Shown here in pieces: positions 8,790 to 15,735 of a stretch of DNA of 64,000 nucleotides. The number at the start of each line of letters is the position of its first letter. The first letter of the stretch is position 1. The position numbers and the translations under genes are program-made. The notes beneath the pieces are model-generated. The model saw only the letters and a program-made list of their open reading frames with translations. It was not told the origin of the DNA and made no database searches. Source of the stretch: Oikopleura dioica (Eukaryota; Animalia; Chordata); assembly GCA_907165135.1 (NCBI GenBank), contig OU015569.1, positions 310,001 through 374,000 of the forward strand, written 5' to 3'.

Positions 8790-9399
8790 TCACTCTGTCT
8801 CCGTCTCCGTTGTTGTTTTAGTTTTGGTTTCAGATTCTTCTGGCTCCTCCTCCTCAAACGATGAGCCGCTCAAAATCGCGATGGAGTCGCCATCCTCGCT
8901 ATCAGAATTATCGTCATCGATCACCTCGAACGACTCATCTTCGACGAAGCTTCCATCGAGCTCAATCACGCGCCGCGGGTTGACCCGTTGACTCGCCTGT
9001 TCTGAATCGTTGAAATCAACAAAGAAACAAAGAAAATTGAACTTACTCAAAATAGCATCAATTTCTTCGGGCGAGAGTCTTTGCTGGCGCGTGTCAAGAA
9101 TCGGCGGCAAATTTTTGATCGAGCCAAGTGGGAAGGTGACCTTTGAATGGCAGGAAGGACAGACGATGTTTTCAGCGTACGCTTTTCTTGAAAAATAGAA
9201 AGTGGAAAATACTAATGCGAAACAAAACTTACGTGCAGCAGGCAACGACGCAGGGGAAGCAAAGAATATGGCGACAGGGCATTTCTAGCGGGTGTCTGAA
9301 GTCGCCCTTGCATTTGGAGCATTTGGAGTCCTCGACTCTGGCATTCCCAATCTCCAAGTTTTGCAGCAAGTTGGAGACGTCTCTCAGTTCGGTCACCAT
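8790..9399 (-). CDS. C3HC4 RING-finger protein with acidic C-terminus
   Basis: CSKCKGDFRHPLEMPCRHILCFPC...IVCPSC after removing a GT-AG intron near 9230-9195, then an Asp/Glu/Ser-rich tail. Confidence 0.7.
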
Positions 9400-9645
9400 T
9401 TTCAAAATTTGATTTGAACCAAGAAAACAGAAAAGAGAAAAAAGCAGGGCAAAAAAAGATGCAACTGATGCTATCTAGATCGCCCGATCGAATTTGCCCA
9501 TCTTTGCATTTTCTTTGAATGCATCACTGATCAATCGTCTTTTTTCTTAAAATGCCATCTTTTGTTATTTATAATCGAAAATGGAAGCTATGAACGATGA
9601 TAGTATCAAATAAATAAATTTGAAGGAAAGAACAAATATCTTCGT

Positions 9646-9761
9646 CTTGGCTCAGCAGCCTGTGTAGAAAACCTGAGTCAGGTTTCTGGAAAAGCTTTTC
9701 ATAAAATGTAAGCATCTTTCAGGCCCTGACTCAGGTTTTCTTCACAGGTCGCCGAGCCCAG
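9646..9761. mobile_element. Short MITE, CCTGAGTCAGG family (intergenic copy)
   Basis: Ends CTTGGCTCAGCAGCCTGTGTAGAAAACCTGAGTCAGG ... CCTGACTCAGGTTTTCTTCACAGGTCGCCGAGCCCAG, shared with at least 9 other copies in the window. Confidence 0.85.
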
Positions 9762-10019
9762 TCGATAGTAAGTGAATTCTAAATAAGAATGTGAGTAATA
9801 AAAGTAATACTGTACTAGTTAAATAATGAACTGGATTCTGAAGTGAATTTTCGTTAGTGACGATTTTATTTCTGAAAGTTTTAACTTTCTCCGTGGTTGA
9901 AATTGAGTAGAATTAAAGACTGAGCAAAACCGCGTATTTTTAGTATACGATATACTACAAGTATACCCTTAGTTTTTTCGGAAGCCGCATTTTGGAAGAC
10001 AATGAAGAAGAAGCAACAG

Positions 10020-12990
10020 TTAGAATTTTTGATTTCTCATTCTTGGTTCTTGATTCTCTGATGTTTTTCTTAGTTTTTGACGCGTCATTTTTTGAAGTTT
10101 TTGGTTCCCAGTTCTTGAGAAATAATCCGTGCATCTAGCCAAGTGGAAAAGCGCGCTTTCCGACTTTTGCGATGCGCTCAAAACCGCTTTCAACAGCTTT
10201 TTGCCTAGTTTTAAAACAAAGTTAGTTTGTTCTAGTCTAGAAAGAAAGTGTTGCTTTACCGTGGATTTGCTCAAGATTATCTCCGGAGGAATACAGTGAC
10301 AGTTCGGGAAGGGAGGGCGTGAAGTCGAAGCACGAGAAAACGTCGAATTCGATGAAGCAAGAGGTTTGGAAAGAGAAAGGGTTGAAGAGGAAATCGTGGC
10401 GAACATTTGAGCCCAAGCGGCCAACGCAAGAAATGCTCTGTTTGTTTCAAGGAGTTATTATTCAAAGCGCTGCTGTTATTTTTACCTTTTTCGTTGGGTC
10501 GCTATCGCTCGGGCGGAAGAAGAAGATCAGTGTTTCGATATCGAAAAAGCAGTTGTACTGAGATAGCTCGATTAAATATTGCACAAGTTGTTGCTCCGGA
10601 TGTGAAAACACCCGGCCGCGGATCATTTCGAAGTAATCGCTCGTTTTCGGCGCGCTGGAGACGAGAACGAAGCTCCTCTCCTTCTCCGTTTTCACATTCG
10701 GCGTGATGGAGAGCCGCTTGAGCAGGTTTCTCGCCGCCTCCTTCGCCGGCTGCCTGAGCAAGTTGCGAAGAAGCACGGCGTGCACCAATTGCCCGTCCGT
10801 TAAATCCCGCTCGAGGAGAAAACCCGTCTCGCTACTGCTTGTTCTGCGCCGCAGCTGGGCAGGGATTTCCACCCTTCCGCCATGCTTGGCTTGGTCCACC
10901 GCTTCCGAGAAGATTTTCGCAAGTTGGCGGCACTGCTCGCTGTCTGGGCCCACCTCTTCCGCCCAGACTTTGTAGTTCTTGTCGACCAGGCCGAGTGGGG
11001 ACTCGTAACGAGCAAAAAAGGCGATCAAATCGTCCTTGCTGATGTTTTCTTTTACGGGCGGGGCAATGCGTGAGCAGGGAAGCAAAGGGGCTTCCACTTT
11101 TTTAGGAATGAGGCGACGATCCCAGGAGACGAAATACTCGTCCCCGTCGAGATCGCTTTCGTGGATTTCGTGCGGATGCGGCCGCTCCAGCGACTGATGC
11201 GTTGGAAAAACGATCACGTCGGTCAAATGTTCGAGGGAACGGACACGACGCTGGGTTAATACACGCACATCGCCGGGATAATAAGTCGGGCTCTTCATGA
11301 CGACGATTCTAGTGCCATTCGGCGGGCTGCGGATGATCAGCCGCCTCCTCGATCGCCTCGTTTCGCCGCTCGAAAGAAAGGTCTCATCGTAGTCGGTGTA
11401 CTGGATGAAGCACTCGCCTTTGCGCAGAGTTTGGCCAAAGTCCGCGGCGCCGTAGAGATTCCTCGAGTGTCGCAGAGGAATAGAGAAGGCTGCGGACTCG
11501 GCTTTCTTCGCATCTGCATCTGAAGTGAGCGAGTAGCTTCGTTGGAATATCGACTCGTAGATGCCCTCCACTGCGAGCTTGATGTCCGGAGGAAAGTCGT
11601 CTTCGCAGTCGATGTTTTCCAGCGTTAGTTTTTCCGCTTCTTCTGTTTTCGACGAGAGAGAAAGAAGATCGAACGCGGACGAGATGTTCTGCTGGCTGAA
11701 CTTGACGAGGTCGAAGAATTCGTTTTGAATTTCGAGAAAGGTCGTGTTAGCGATTCCCAGGGCGGATAAAACTAACACAAATTGCCGATTCAAGCGCCCG
11801 TAAACGAATGGTTTCGACTCTCCGCCTCTGCAGATCCCCAGCAGTCTGCCCGTGCGCCCTTGCTTGCGCTCAGTGTACTTTAGGCGGCCCTTGATCGTGG
11901 CGAAATTCCAGTCGAATTTTTTCTGAATCCCTTTTCTCAATGAATTGAAGACTTGAGTTGAACTTGTGCTGTTATGGTTAATACCTGTGATTCGCGGAGA
12001 ACGAGCTCGAGAGAACTGCCATCAAGTGCCGGGTCGTGAACGAGGATGCCTTTGCAGCCCATGAAGCGGATTTGGACGATGGAGGGAACCTGGAAGGGTT
12101 GATGGCAGTATCTGAAAGTGATTCATAAAGAAAACGGCAATAAAACAGAAAATACCTCCGCGCGCAGTGCTTGTTGAGAGTGAACCGCTCGGCCAGACTC
12201 GTTGACATTCGTCCACAACCGTCAGTAAAGTTATAACCGTGGTGTCGAATGTCCTCTTCGATTTTCCATTTGCCGTCTTCGATGAACTCAGCGTGGCGTG
12301 TAGAAGAGAGAAGAAGGCCCAATCTCGCGCCAAACTTGGGCACCGTCTTGATCGCCGCGAACTTGCCAAAGTAGTTCCAAATCAGCGACGGGCAAATGAG
12401 ACAGCGTCGTTGCTGGGTTTTCCGTCTCGTTCGTCGGAGAAAGTCGAGTCTGCCGCTGTCGTACTCGAGCCACCTGCTTGTCCACCACTTGGCGTCGTAG
12501 TTGACCAAAATGCACATCTTGTAGCGGAGCTGGGACGACGAAAAGGCGAAGAATCTGAAGAGACATTCACCCTGCCCGTCGACCTCGCAAAGCACCCCTT
12601 GCTTCAAGACCTTCTCGATGACATCCTTAGGGACTTAAATTATTCCAAACGTTTTTGACAAAATTGCTTACTTTTGCCCTGGCGCTCGTCGAACTCGAGC
12701 TTGACGAAATCGTCGACGTCGAAGTCCCGTGTGAGCGGGCACTCGTGAAAGTCCTCGATCATCGTCTCGCACGTGATCGTGCCAAACTCGTGATCTTGCC
12801 GACTTCTTTCGCACTCCTTCGAAATCTTGAAACACTTGATCTTGTCTTTCTTCTTCCACAATTTCGCCGCGTTCTCTTTCTCGTCCTCCTCGTTGTCCTC
12901 ATCGTTGTTTTCAGCCGGCTCCCAAGTCAACGCCCGTGCCGCTCGGTCCTGTCCTCGATAGAGACAGTCTTGCAAACGACATCTTCCCAT
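10020..12990 (-). CDS. Eukaryote-type (cellular) RNA-dependent RNA polymerase, RDR/RRF/EGO family; 5' and 3' ends approximate
   Basis: All hallmark blocks appear in order: FRFFAFSSSQLR, YFGKFAAIKTVPKFGARLGLLLS, YNFTDGCGRMS, VPSIVQIRFMGCKGIL, KSPTYYPGDVR, DVIVFP...RPHPHEIHES-DLDGD-EYFVSWDRRLIP (DLDGD at 11140-11154), LAKIFSEAVDQAKHG. Short GT-AG introns join these blocks in frame. Confidence 0.93.
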
Positions 12991-13052
12991 AGCAAATTCC
13001 AAACTGGCTCAATCCATTCTAAAGCAACCAAAGTCGGCATTGATTTCAATGG

Positions 13053-13818
13053 TCAGTACCAAATGAATATTATCAGAAAAGCAATCAACATGTCAAGGTA
13101 AATATCGTCAAAGGGCATTACTCCGATGAACTTCTGAAAAATCGCTCTTTCTTCTAACGGACCAAACGATCAGAAAATAGGCTCGCATTCGATCAAAGGA
13201 AGAAAAAACCGCAGGAAACAAGGCCCGCTTTAATGAAAGCGACTGCATGAGAGCCCGAATCTAGAATCAATAGATCGTTCCTTATTATCGCCCTCTACCC
13301 AGACACATCCATTTGGAACTTCAACTTCCCCGACATCTTCCCATCCATCACCTAGATACACGCGCCGCCTCCAGTACGCTACAGTAGGCGATTTAGTAAA
13401 ATAAAAATCAGCTGATCTAGAATTTGCCTCTTTCGCCAGCCAAATGAGTGATTCTTTTCAAAATAGTCTTTCCCTCTTGTTCCGGGTCTTCAGCTACAAT
13501 CACGTCGTTTTTAGAGAGCTTTTCGATTCCAGCGAAAAATGGGCGAATAATGATCAACGAGTTGTGTTCTATAGTGGGCTCCATCGAGTGCCCGTTCACG
13601 AGCAGGAGAAGTCTGCGAAGGGTTAGCGGAAGTAACTCGAATTCTACTTAGACAAAATCAAGAATCGTAGACTTATTTTCCTCTCCCATACTCTTTCCTA
13701 GAATCATTTTAATTTTACGCACTTTCGAAAGTGGAAACGATGCCTTAGCTGCGTAGAAGGAGCACAAACAGCCAGTGTACAAAATTCTTGAGCGATTAGT
13801 GAACTGCCGAAAGACCAT
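13053..13818 (-). CDS. IMMP1L: Mitochondrial inner membrane protease subunit (IMP1/IMP2, peptidase S26); 3' end uncertain
   Basis: VNGHSMEPTI...KNDVIVAEDPEQEGKTILKRITHLAGE; VEVPNGCVWVEGDNKERSIDSR. Catalytic Ser and Lys are present. Confidence 0.75.
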
Positions 13819-13947
13819 TCTTTGGAATCAGAGGCGTTCTTTATTTACATAATAAAATATCAATAATCAGACAAGGCACTTGAGATTTTGGATTTTGGAA
13901 GAGCAAAGGAAGAAGTGTGGCGGAGAAAAAGGGGAACAGATCGGAGG

Positions 13948-15735
13948 TCAGTGAGTGTGTTGGTTTGAAGCAAGGTTTGGAGAAGACGAGGAACAAATTT
14001 GGAGACGCTGCAGTTCTTGAAGAATTTGGTGGATGTTTTTGCGTTTTGAAGAGCTTGAAAAGGGAATGAATCGCTTCCTGTAGAAGTTTTATTTTAGTAC
14101 CTGTATTGCCAGCAGCTGTTTCCGATCAAGTTCCAAAGAGACTCGGGAAAGCCATCTGGCTGAACGAGGCGATACCCTTCCGAGAGATACTGGGAAATGT
14201 TCAGACAGTCAATGTCTTTGTAAGGGGCTTGGGCTAACGAGAAGAGCTCCCAGACGAATATTCCATAAGCCCAGACGTCGCCGCTCAAACTGGCGTGGTT
14301 GGGAGTGTCGATGCATTCTGGAGCTTGCCAACGAATTGGCCGTCCTTCGAAGTAGTCTGCCGGGAAGAGCTCGAGGGAGATGACGGTGTCGCCCAGGAGA
14401 ATGTTTTCGTTATATTCGTCCAGGACGAAGTTGCGTGAAGCAACGTCGCCGTGGATGATGTCATTCGACCTGAATCACCAGTTGTTTTCAAATCTGGTTT
14501 AAAAGATTGCCCGGGTGCAGTATATAACGGTAGTTCAAGAACGCTTACGATAGATAGGCGAGTGCTTCAGCCGCCTGATAGGTGAATCGTTTCAGTTTGA
14601 CAGTGCTAACTGTACTTCTATGCGACGGATTTGTTCGCAGTTGGCAACGCTTGAGAAACCATTTCAGCGGTCCTAGATTTCGATTGTCGAACTGTTTGTC
14701 TCGAGAAAGGAAGAACTACCTTCTACGTTCTGGAAGTACATCGCTTGGAAGTTCCGTTCTTGAAAGCTGGTCATGTTGACGGAAAGAATGAGATCGCAGG
14801 GCTTCAATCTTTCGAAAATCTTCGCCCGGCCCATCATTTCTTCTCGGTTGCTTACTTCGCGCAGTTTCTTCACAAAAACTAAAAAATCAAGTGAGTTATT
14901 TCCCTCCCTTTTCCATTCTACCTCGTCTACTTTCGCCATCGTGCTCGAACTTGCCGATCAAGCAGGAACCGTAGTCGCCCTCGATGACGGTCTTGACGAT
15001 TGTAAGTCTTTCAGGAGTGTAATTCGAAGTCAGGCGCAGCGAGGAGCGATTAATGAGCTTTTCTTTTTCGGGCGAAAAGAAGCCACGAAGCTGCGCTTCT
15101 TGCTCGTTTTGGCGATAGTTGACGGCGTAGATTACCAAAGCCAGAGCAGATATCTAAACACGCAATATCTCTATTATGAGGTCATTTGCTTTACTCACGA
15201 TTATGGCCAAGAACGAGATAATAGCGGCAATGGTTATACTCGAATCGCTGCAACTCATTTCCAAATTTGAAGTTTCTGATTTCACTTCACATTTGATTGA
15301 GCCGGAAATCGTCGATTTTTTTGAGGATGATCTATTGGAGTTCTTCCAATGGGTGATCGATTTGTTGAATTGATGAATGGGATCGTCAGAAGAACAGCTG
15401 ATATTCAGGGAAATTGGAGTGTCATTTTCAGAACTCGAATCTTGAGATTTTGACGAATCGAGTGAGCAATAACCGCAGGCGAGAGTGATGATCAAAGAAG
15501 AGCGCGAAGAAATCTAAGAAAGCGACTAGTTTTCGGTTTTTTGTTGACTCCTTCTTACCCATTTGGCGGAAAATTGATTGGGACTGGGGCCTTCGTAAGT
15601 GATGTTGTATTCATCAGCCGAAAGAGACAACTGCGTTTTTGGATTGAACTGCGATTTCCCCGGTTTTCCAAGCGCCACGCCGAAAAGTCCAAAAATCGCT
15701 GCTAGAAAGAGCAAAGCTCGAGAGAGAGTCCTCAT
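13948..15735 (-). CDS. RYK: RYK/derailed-like receptor tyrosine pseudokinase
   Basis: Signal peptide (MRTLSRALLFLAAIFGLFGVALG), TM (ITIAAIISFLAIIV), kinase IIHGDVASRNFVLD...LLGDTVISLELFPADY...RPIRWQAPEC...GDVWAYGIFVWELFSLAQAPYKDID...YLSEGYRLVQP. It lacks DFG, as RYK does. Confidence 0.8.

Follow-up and report, generated by a model that had tools for sequence, protein, structure and literature searches.

We analysed a 64,000-nucleotide stretch of Oikopleura dioica contig OU015569.1, hereafter the window, and identified a single gene that, judged from its sequence, is an intact eukaryotic RNA-dependent RNA polymerase of the cellular family (RdRP; PF05183). Cellular RdRPs are RNA-copying enzymes that amplify silencing RNAs in worms and plants. 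The gene lies on the minus strand and consists of six exons and five introns, all with GT–AG boundaries and with lengths, from intron 1 to 5, of 38, 44, 62, 48, and 55 nt; it runs from an ATG at 12990 to a TAA at 10020, and its spliced frame is open over 907 codons, encoding a 907-aa protein. An earlier note made from the sequence alone had placed the gene at 10020 to 12990, the positions of its stop and start codons, and had described short spliceosomal introns and a DLDGD catalytic loop at 11140 to 11154. The introns are indeed within 38 to 62 nt, and the loop is encoded exactly there (11154 to 11140 on the minus strand). The positions of all five junctions are backed by relatives, namely an mRNA contig (L001), a further contig (L003), and a protein model from Norwegian O. 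dioica (P0032). The features are as follows.

13053..13055, minus strand: stop codon of an IMMP1L-like (peptidase S26) gene, from frame reading and the Pfam S26 match of the upstream exon
13019..13020, minus strand: predicted spliced-leader trans-splice acceptor AG; L001 reads SL/AATGGAT... and the window ...ctttag/AATGGAT...
12672..12990, minus strand: exon 1, ATG at 12990-12988, residues 1-106, with an acidic stretch and a Cys/His-containing N-terminal region; residues 3-106 align to L001 and residues 1-109 to L003
12634..12671, minus strand: intron 1, 38 nt, GT-AG; gap of ~31 nt between L003 blocks at the same site
12156..12633, minus strand: exon 2, where the RdRP domain begins (PF05183 profile positions 72-178)
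12112..12155, minus strand: intron 2, 44 nt, GT-AG; junction contiguous in the L001 mRNA contig and the P0032 model
11985..12111, minus strand: exon 3, with the conserved Q-x-R-x-x-G-x-K-G block (Q279, R281, G284, K286, G287)
11923..11984, minus strand: intron 3, 62 nt, GT-AG; junction ...RESQ/KKF... identical in the L001 mRNA and P0032
10486..11922, minus strand: exon 4, 479 aa, catalytic core (PF05183 profile positions 229-547) and C-terminal helical region
11140..11154, minus strand: catalytic loop DbDGD, D565-L-D567-G-D569, by direct sequence reading
10438..10485, minus strand: intron 4, 48 nt, GT-AG; L001 continues into GTAAG at the homologous site
10260..10437, minus strand: exon 5; residues 788-852 kept as coding sequence in L003 with 48% identity
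10205..10259, minus strand: intron 5, 55 nt, GT-AG; gap of ~80 nt between L003 blocks at the same site
10020..10204, minus strand: exon 6, stop codon TAA at 10022-10020; residues 847-897 match L003 with 39% identity
9865..9870, minus strand: candidate AATAAA poly(A) signal ~150 nt past the stop codon, from sequence reading

Exons 1, 5, and 6 gave no matches to additional Pfam domains. The protein P0078, on contig L006, continues through sequence that differs from the coding sequence just ahead of the intron 3 junction, which fits an intron in that lineage.

The profile search proposed in the earlier note was run and assigned the gene to PF05183 far above the curated Pfam cutoff of 23.8 bits, with 182.8 bits (E 1.5e-53) for the open reading frame of exon 4 and 66 bits (E 3.6e-18) for that of exon 2. 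The full ordered set of RDR motifs described in the same note was also borne out. Among 53 near-invariant columns, those with 90% conservation or more across 41 non-larvacean RdRPs, 50 are kept, and the D, L, D, G, and D columns of the catalytic loop are invariant in our alignment (A1) and in at least 40 of the 41 non-larvacean proteins. The three exceptions, V533R, G551Q, and G563E, are lineage specific. The last of them concerns the Gly two residues before DLDGD, found in all 41 other RdRPs and replaced by Glu in all five larvacean proteins; as it is common to all five, the change must be old and tolerated.

The predicted fold agrees with the family assignment. An AlphaFold model of exon 4 (pLDDT 74.6, pTM 0.75), which covers that exon only and leaves the first barrel, encoded by exons 2–3, outside, was matched by Foldseek to maize RDR2 (E 1e-16) and QDE-1 (E 5.6e-11), and the top 21 matches, with E values from 1e-16 to 6e-9, were all RDR2 or QDE-1. 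Plant RDR2 (PDB 7eu0, 7roz, 7w82) is the best solved-structure match by both sequence (E 6.6e-25 for exon 4) and fold, and its P-G-D, D-L-D-G-D-x-x-F-V-x-W-D, and A-V-D-x-A-K-x-G blocks align with the larvacean protein. Nevertheless, it belongs to the alpha clade, a different subfamily (100/100 separation), and no N-terminal RRM was detected in the larvacean protein. RDR2 acts coupled to Pol IV, which is not known from animals. Neurospora QDE-1 (PDB 2j7n, 7y7p) shares the two-barrel polymerase fold (Foldseek E about 1e-11) and represents a more distant subfamily, as it gave no sequence match at E 1e-3. The protein would be an active polymerase using single-stranded RNA as the template for complementary RNA, presumably by the mechanism of RDR2 and QDE-1 with two barrels and three aspartates.

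The setting among conserved animal genes, which the earlier note had recognized, was confirmed with Pfam, which finds SPT16, CATIP, peptidase S26 (IMMP-like), and USP neighbours; the RdRP gene sits between the IMMP1L-like, SPT16, and CATIP genes. The arrangement recurs elsewhere, RdRP being followed by SPT16 on the Norwegian O. dioica scaffold FN655687.1 and by CATIP on a second larvacean contig, from a metagenome (L002). As far as sequence can tell, the gene is a long-standing resident of the Oikopleura genome. The stop codon of the IMMP1L-like gene is separated from the predicted acceptor by ~35 nt and from the RdRP ATG by 62 nt, and given this short spacing, the two genes are probably one operon with RdRP as the downstream cistron; the criterion quoted for O. 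dioica operons is 60 bp (PMC7986045).

Transcripts of relatives point in the same direction. Four mRNA contigs from three data sets (L001, L004, L005, and L009) start with the last 20–25 nt of the O. dioica spliced leader, the sequence of which we checked in PMC6883708. Three of them have uninterrupted frames of 972 (L004), 1091 (L005), and 1037 (L009) codons, L004 and L005 as called proteins, and L001 gives a 635-aa product following a frame break. By comparison with these four mRNAs, we infer that the transcript of the RdRP gene receives the Oikopleura spliced leader by trans-splicing at 13019/13018; the predicted mRNA start, AATGGAT at 13018, would give a 28-nt 5' UTR with a two-codon upstream open reading frame (ATG GAT TGA, 13017–13009). 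We found no spliced-leader gene in the window.

In a phylogenetic tree, the larvacean sequences formed a clade (100/100) that was sister to a metazoan clade of sponge, mollusc, sea-spider, crinoid, and amphioxus RdRPs (97/93). The alpha clade, comprising plant RDR1/2/6-like, nematode, and spider sequences, was similarly supported (100/100) and excluded the larvacean sequences. The phylogenetic check suggested in the earlier note is thus answered for the alpha references, outside which the gene falls, and for the animal RdRPs, to which it is sister, the labelled references in the tree being those of the alpha clade. The support values overstate how secure the exact sister relationship is, since the stem branch leading to the larvaceans is long (0.98). 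In comparisons with the PDB structures, both major clades were nearer to RDR2 than to QDE-1, which does not settle beta versus gamma. According to PMC6396948, cephalochordates have only alpha and gamma RdRPs; since the amphioxus relative is non-alpha, a gamma label in the sense of that study is likely.

A contaminant, a viral insert, or an origin shared with fungi could be suspected from the patchy distribution of animal RdRPs and from the tree, where a fungal clade falls in the same superclade as the larvacean and metazoan clades. The earlier note had argued against a contaminant or viral insert, and synteny, the spliced-leader mRNAs of relatives, and phylogeny all agree with it. The gene contains Oikopleura-type mini-introns, shares its contig with animal housekeeping genes on either side, keeps a collinear arrangement in two other larvacean assemblies, and has relatives whose mRNAs bear the Oikopleura spliced leader; PF05183 is a cellular family and no viral RdRP family. 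The sister group is metazoan, and a grouping of larvaceans with the fungal clade was rejected (p-AU 0.006). With introns, flanks, collinearity, spliced leader, and tree all against it, a foreign origin is largely refuted, and we consider the remaining chance of it negligible.

The positional orthologue in Norwegian O. dioica, P0032, is the same gene with SPT16 next to it and is 63% identical to the window's gene over 727 alignable codons. It is also the only part annotated before, as a 265-aa fragment on FN655687.1 named "unnamed protein product [Oikopleura dioica]" in NCBI and "RNA-dependent RNA polymerase" in UniRef; the annotation is fragmentary because two N runs break the gene in the 2010 assembly. 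The protein database contained no full-length or near-identical protein from the window's lineage and so yielded no transcript-derived copy. A literature search, the coverage of which stopped short of the original DNAi paper (PMC4424657), found no paper joining Oikopleura or tunicates to a cellular RdRP.

Identities to the Norwegian orthologue at the first, second, and third codon positions are 69, 79, and 41%, with a dN of 0.31; as dS is saturated, we give these values and no dN/dS. The pattern indicates that purifying selection acts on the RdRP coding sequence. RdRP has diverged more quickly than the neighbouring SPT16, with amino-acid identities to the Norwegian lineage of 63% and 78–90%, respectively. 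At least five larvacean lineages retain orthologues or paralogues.

A decaying or silent relic, with the frame open yet expression or catalysis gone, would be consistent with G563E adjoining the catalytic loop, with the frequent loss of RdRPs in animals reported in PMC6396948, and with our seeing no transcript for the window's lineage. Over 5 kb, 0–5 partial reads came from four RNA runs labelled as the same species (three oligo-dT RNA-seq, one single-cell), and housekeeping neighbours were equally bare; as these runs probably come from a divergent cryptic lineage, the counts are void and no sign of silence. None of the gene's words was present in RNA-like runs with the same species label, and JGI metagenome and metatranscriptome contigs, searched for the exact exon 3/4 junction sequence, gave no match, an uninformative outcome. 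On the other hand, the 907-codon frame remains open once five introns with canonical splice sites are removed, the 50 of 53 family-invariant residues survive on a very long branch, and second codon positions remain 79% identical while third positions are saturated. Moreover, the larvacean orthologues and paralogues are expressed as full-length spliced-leader mRNAs, and G563E occurs in every one of the five larvacean proteins. We therefore regard a relic as highly improbable. The window very probably harbours a genuine, intact, and vertically inherited cellular RdRP gene of a lineage within the O. dioica complex.

For comparison within animals, we used the non-alpha relatives from Branchiostoma belcheri (KAI8492821.1 / XP_019625576.1), Anneissia japonica (XP_033122012.1), Antedon mediterranea (XP_071941136.1), and Patella caerulea (KAK6177765.1) and a transcript of Oscarella pearsei. 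They have the PF05183 core and DLDGD loop in common with the larvacean protein, although the identity is only 29–36%, and the similarity to the amphioxus protein spans residues 49 to 788, past the limits of the Pfam domain. The Branchiostoma and Antedon proteins and two from a neighbouring clade are 1560–1860 aa long and carry a C-terminal UPF1-like SF1 helicase (AAA_11/AAA_12; E 3e-66 against human UPF1); these are the ones scanned, by Pfam or PDB, and further long relatives are those of Patella (1915 aa) and Oscarella (1638 aa). In contrast to the scanned long proteins, the larvacean RdRPs are 907–1091 aa and have no such part: Pfam gave no SF1 helicase match in exons 5 and 6 or in the larvacean relatives, and tblastn with the amphioxus helicase found no match in the whole window. 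The enzyme would do without the UPF1-like helicase found joined to RdRP in the scanned long animal relatives.

The C. elegans-type RdRPs EGO-1, RRF-1, and RRF-3 share the family and catalytic loop with the larvacean protein and, to our knowledge, are the only animal RdRPs proven to be needed for RNAi. Nematode sequences (Plectus, Meloidogyne) are placed inside the alpha clade, apart from larvaceans, and their role in RNAi is for that reason not transferable by orthology. For the larvacean enzyme, an active role outside RNAi, for instance in gene regulation or RNA surveillance through long antisense or double-stranded RNA that it would synthesize, is a serious candidate, if somewhat short of an even chance. 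PMC6396948 concludes so for Branchiostoma, and the UPF1-like helicase fusion of the relatives suggests surveillance-type chemistry as much as RNAi; however, no positive evidence for such a role is known from any animal, and the larvacean proteins lack the helicase.

Alternatively, the enzyme may amplify siRNAs: with targeted transcripts as templates, it would produce antisense RNA or dsRNA, from which secondary siRNAs directed at transposons or viruses would arise, and this would account for the strong RNAi and the dsDNA-triggered silencing (DNAi) of O. dioica. Such a reading is subordinate to the best explanation and does not compete with the identity of the gene. The intact and selected catalytic core speaks for siRNA amplification, as do DNAi functioning in O. 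dioica ovaries (PMC5345011) and amplification in RNAi being the family's only established role (PMC6396948). The faster evolution relative to SPT16 is frequent in defence genes but is explained equally well by relaxed constraint. The DNAi study (PMC5345011) mentions neither mechanism nor RdRP. Amphioxus is the one chordate studied, and it showed no RdRP-dependent siRNAs: small-RNA sequencing designed for 5'-triphosphate RNAs gave no RdRP products (PMC6396948). The amphioxus RdRPs include the named chordate relative in our tree. On balance, we hold siRNA amplification to be possible but doubtful, and a role in it, in transposon defence, or in DNAi is speculation.

Larvaceans are tunicates, the invertebrates closest to vertebrates and their sister group. 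We know of no cellular RdRPs in vertebrates and, as far as published, of no RdRP-based RNA amplification in other tunicates. Larvaceans might have kept a working form of it, in which targeted or aberrant transcripts serve a helicase-less enzyme as templates for antisense RNA or dsRNA; this would explain the potent ovarian RNAi and the silencing by promoter-less dsDNA (DNAi) and could provide defence against transposons and viruses. We offer this broader scenario tentatively and consider it unlikely; if true, it would be the first chordate RdRP-dependent silencing pathway. Oikopleura is a tractable laboratory chordate: it completes its life cycle in 5 days, can be injected in the ovary, responds to RNAi, and shows a DNA-triggered silencing that awaits an explanation. 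A full-length, apparently functional RdRP in it makes the role of non-nematode animal RdRPs directly testable. As the public annotation holds only the gap-broken fragment, surveys demanding a near-complete domain, such as that of PMC6396948, may have missed the gene. The absence of the fused UPF1-like helicase in larvaceans offers a further point of comparison.

The RNA-dependent RNA polymerase (RdRP) gene of the window is, on well-supported evidence, a real, full-length new member of a known family. After removal of five short introns, its frame on the minus strand runs from an ATG at 12990 to a TAA at 10022-10020 and encodes 907 amino acids; an earlier note, made from the sequence alone, had bounded the gene by 10020 and 12990, exactly the stop and start codons of this frame. 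The DLDGD loop that it placed at 11140-11154 is encoded at 11154-11140 on the minus strand, and the short spliceosomal introns that it described number five, of 38-62 nt, all GT-AG:

12671-12634, minus strand: RdRP intron 1, 38 nt, GT-AG
12155-12112, minus strand: RdRP intron 2, 44 nt, GT-AG
11984-11923, minus strand: RdRP intron 3, 62 nt, GT-AG
10485-10438, minus strand: RdRP intron 4, 48 nt, GT-AG
10259-10205, minus strand: RdRP intron 5, 55 nt, GT-AG

At junctions 2/3 and 3/4, an mRNA contig from a larvacean relative (L001) and the NCBI model P0032 are contiguous with the same residues, junctions 1/2 and 5/6 coincide with short gaps separating aligned blocks in the Norwegian O. dioica scaffold, and at the position of intron 4 L001 runs into GTAAG, its 3′ end entering the donor. 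The window contains one copy of the gene. Intron positions vary among larvacean lineages, as ~340 nt (L003 827-1166; intron or insertion) split the Norwegian orthologue where exon 2 of the window is uninterrupted, and introns 2 and 3 are absent from a larvacean metagenome contig (L002).

The Pfam RdRP profile PF05183, which the earlier note had proposed as a check, matched the ORFs of exon 4 (E 1.5e-53, profile positions 229-547) and exon 2 (E 3.6e-18, positions 72-178), and the conserved Q-x-R-x-x-G-x-K-G block sits between them in the small exon 3. Aligned with 41 RdRPs of plants, fungi, protists and non-larvacean animals, the protein retains 50 of the 53 columns that are at least 90% conserved among these, including all three catalytic aspartates. 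The exceptions are V533R, G551Q and G563E: position 551 is variable among four larvacean relatives, while at 533 and 563 all four share the residue of the window protein. G563, two residues ahead of DLDGD, is invariant in the 41 other RdRPs and Glu throughout the larvacean clade, and is the single active-site-adjacent feature whose catalytic consequence could not be judged. The best solved-structure match by sequence was Arabidopsis RDR2 (E 6.6e-25), with the hallmark blocks aligned. An AlphaFold model of exon 4 only, built from a 23-row alignment (mean pLDDT 74.6, pTM 0.75), gave RDR2 or QDE-1 as all of the top 21 Foldseek matches in the PDB (E 1e-16 to 6e-9). Identity to the Norwegian orthologue over 727 codons was 69% at first, 79% at second and 41% at third codon positions (dN 0.31, dS saturated), a pattern of purifying selection acting on a fast-evolving protein. 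Of its function, the chemistry is the confident part: the enzyme should be a two-barrel, three-aspartate polymerase, predicted to copy single-stranded RNA into complementary RNA.

The family is well known, but the O. dioica record is only an automatically named 265-aa fragment, P0032 (NCBI "unnamed protein product [Oikopleura dioica]"; UniRef "RNA-dependent RNA polymerase"), encoded on FN655687.1 of assembly GCA_000209555.1. Our literature search found no published report of a cellular RdRP in Oikopleura or any tunicate. A 2019 survey (PMC6396948) kept near-complete domains only and thus may have missed the O. dioica fragments. The window now provides a full-length RdRP in an experimentally useful lineage. 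Its setting among conserved animal genes, recognized earlier, is borne out by the Pfam matches of the neighbors:

upstream of RdRP: peptidase S26 (IMMP1L-like) gene
about 8500-4766: SPT16 (FACT) gene
about 4430-3470: CATIP gene
beyond CATIP: USP gene

The Norwegian scaffold is collinear with the window, having the entire RdRP gene followed by SPT16, but two N runs interrupt the former, which accounts for its annotation as no more than two pieces, 265 and 203 aa long. Window and Norwegian sequences are 63% identical in RdRP and 78-90% in SPT16; the window lineage is thus well separated from the Norwegian reference. In L002, an RdRP of 39% identity is followed by CATIP in the same orientation, and the sequence runs containing the DNA comprise four assemblies under one species label, a single assembly under a second label, and metagenomes from the sea. 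Between RdRP and SPT16, the window has a small minus-strand gene (8790-9405), whose N-terminal exon is rich in Cys and possibly RING-like and whose tail is acidic; it had no match in the Pfam search and lacks an equivalent at the corresponding position of L003, where RdRP and SPT16 are ~530 bp apart. An inverted repeat at 9642-9765 (41 nt, 85% complementary, 42-nt spacer), ~260-380 nt past the RdRP stop codon, looks like a MITE family, and its arm has four further copies in the window (28409, 36129, 45155 and 47405; none expected by chance).

Four RNA runs of the same species label had almost no reads over 9000-14000, neighboring genes included, and most likely represent a different cryptic lineage. 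The family is nevertheless clearly expressed in Oikopleura-type larvaceans, as seen in transcripts of relatives rather than of the window gene. In four RdRP contigs from three independent data sets, the 5′ end consists of the final 20-25 nt of the O. dioica spliced leader (PMC6883708):

L001 and L004: spliced-leader contigs, source SRR26381724
L005: spliced-leader contig, source ERR9850594
L009: spliced-leader contig, source JGI Ga0314683

Unbroken RdRP frames of 972, 1091 and 1037 codons follow the leader in L004, L005 and L009, respectively, and L001 is the closest relative of the window protein (53% identity). Since AATGGAT directly follows the leader in L001 and is preceded by ctttag in the window (ctttag|AATGGAT, 13020-13012), we predict trans-splicing at 13019/13018, which would leave a 28-nt 5′ UTR with a two-codon uORF. 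A tiny uORF (ATG GAT ...) lies 5′ of the RdRP start codon in both the window (13009-13017) and L001 (22-36), beginning 1 nt past the trans-splice site, predicted in the former and observed in the latter. Between the end of the IMMP1L-like gene (13055-13053) and the RdRP ATG lie 62 nt, a gap at the limit for calling O. dioica operons (PMC7986045), and an IMMP1L-RdRP operon is plausible. Seven extra nucleotides (GTCTAAG, 357-363) sit precisely where exons 1 and 2 of L001 join and shift its frame; most likely, splicing chose an AG that lies 7 nt ahead of the productive acceptor, and the isoform is unproductive.

An exhaustive phmmer search with exon 4 returned 1845 relatives, the best match beyond larvaceans being the crinoid Anneissia (E 9e-95), followed by fragments and then amphioxus and Antedon. 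The IQ-TREE phylogeny of 46 RdRP domain sequences separated an alpha clade of plant, nematode, spider and SAD-1-like fungal sequences (support 100/100) from a second superclade (100/100) consisting of a fungal clade, a long-protein clade and a 19-row clade (97/93). Within the last, five larvacean RdRPs form a clade (100/100, stem length 0.98) sister to those of sponge, mollusc, sea spider, crinoid and amphioxus. Grouping the larvaceans with the fungal clade, an arrangement chosen after the tree was seen, cost 13.9 log-likelihood units and was rejected (p-AU 0.006). The position agrees with the argument of PMC6396948 that animal RdRPs descend vertically from an ancestral metazoan RdRP and were lost many times. 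Of the placement against RDR-alpha, -beta and -gamma proposed in the earlier note, the separation from alpha (100/100) and the affinity to animal RdRPs (97/93) were obtained, whereas "gamma" in the sense of PMC6396948 is probable by elimination: the amphioxus relative is non-alpha, and cephalochordates, according to that paper, have only alpha and gamma. Two gene-poor, animal-like ENA contigs (L007 and L008) carry a single-exon 799-aa RdRP of the metazoan clade at 10001-12400, with an SH2 exon and zf-RVT nearby.

RNAi amplification is the sole established role of the family, RNAi and DNAi are potent in the O. dioica ovary (PMC5345011), and the RdRP gene evolves faster than its neighbor, yet we hold it rather unlikely that the window enzyme amplifies siRNAs: secondary siRNAs were not detectable for the amphioxus RdRPs (PMC6396948), and orthology cannot transfer function to the larvacean enzyme because the nematode RdRPs whose role is proven are in the alpha clade.

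The larvacean proteins also differ from their relatives in architecture. Amphioxus (P0008), Antedon (P0014) and the two scanned members of the long-protein clade (P0009 and P0010) have an N-terminal RdRP fused to a C-terminal UPF1-like SF1 helicase (Pfam AAA_11 and AAA_12; amphioxus against human UPF1, E 3e-66). In PMC6396948 we found no mention of a helicase. The larvacean proteins, of 907-1091 aa, showed no second domain and the window no UPF1-like helicase; the larvacean helicase is either lost or encoded elsewhere in the genome. In fission yeast, Neurospora and C. elegans, RdRPs cooperate with SF1 or ZNFX1-type helicases that are separate proteins, and by analogy a separate partner would be a reasonable expectation for the larvacean enzyme. 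Similar lengths (1560-2400 aa) are found in many further members of the superclade, the helicase scan covering four proteins; P0010 additionally has AAA_28 at its N terminus, and two RdRP stretches occur in the Anneissia protein.
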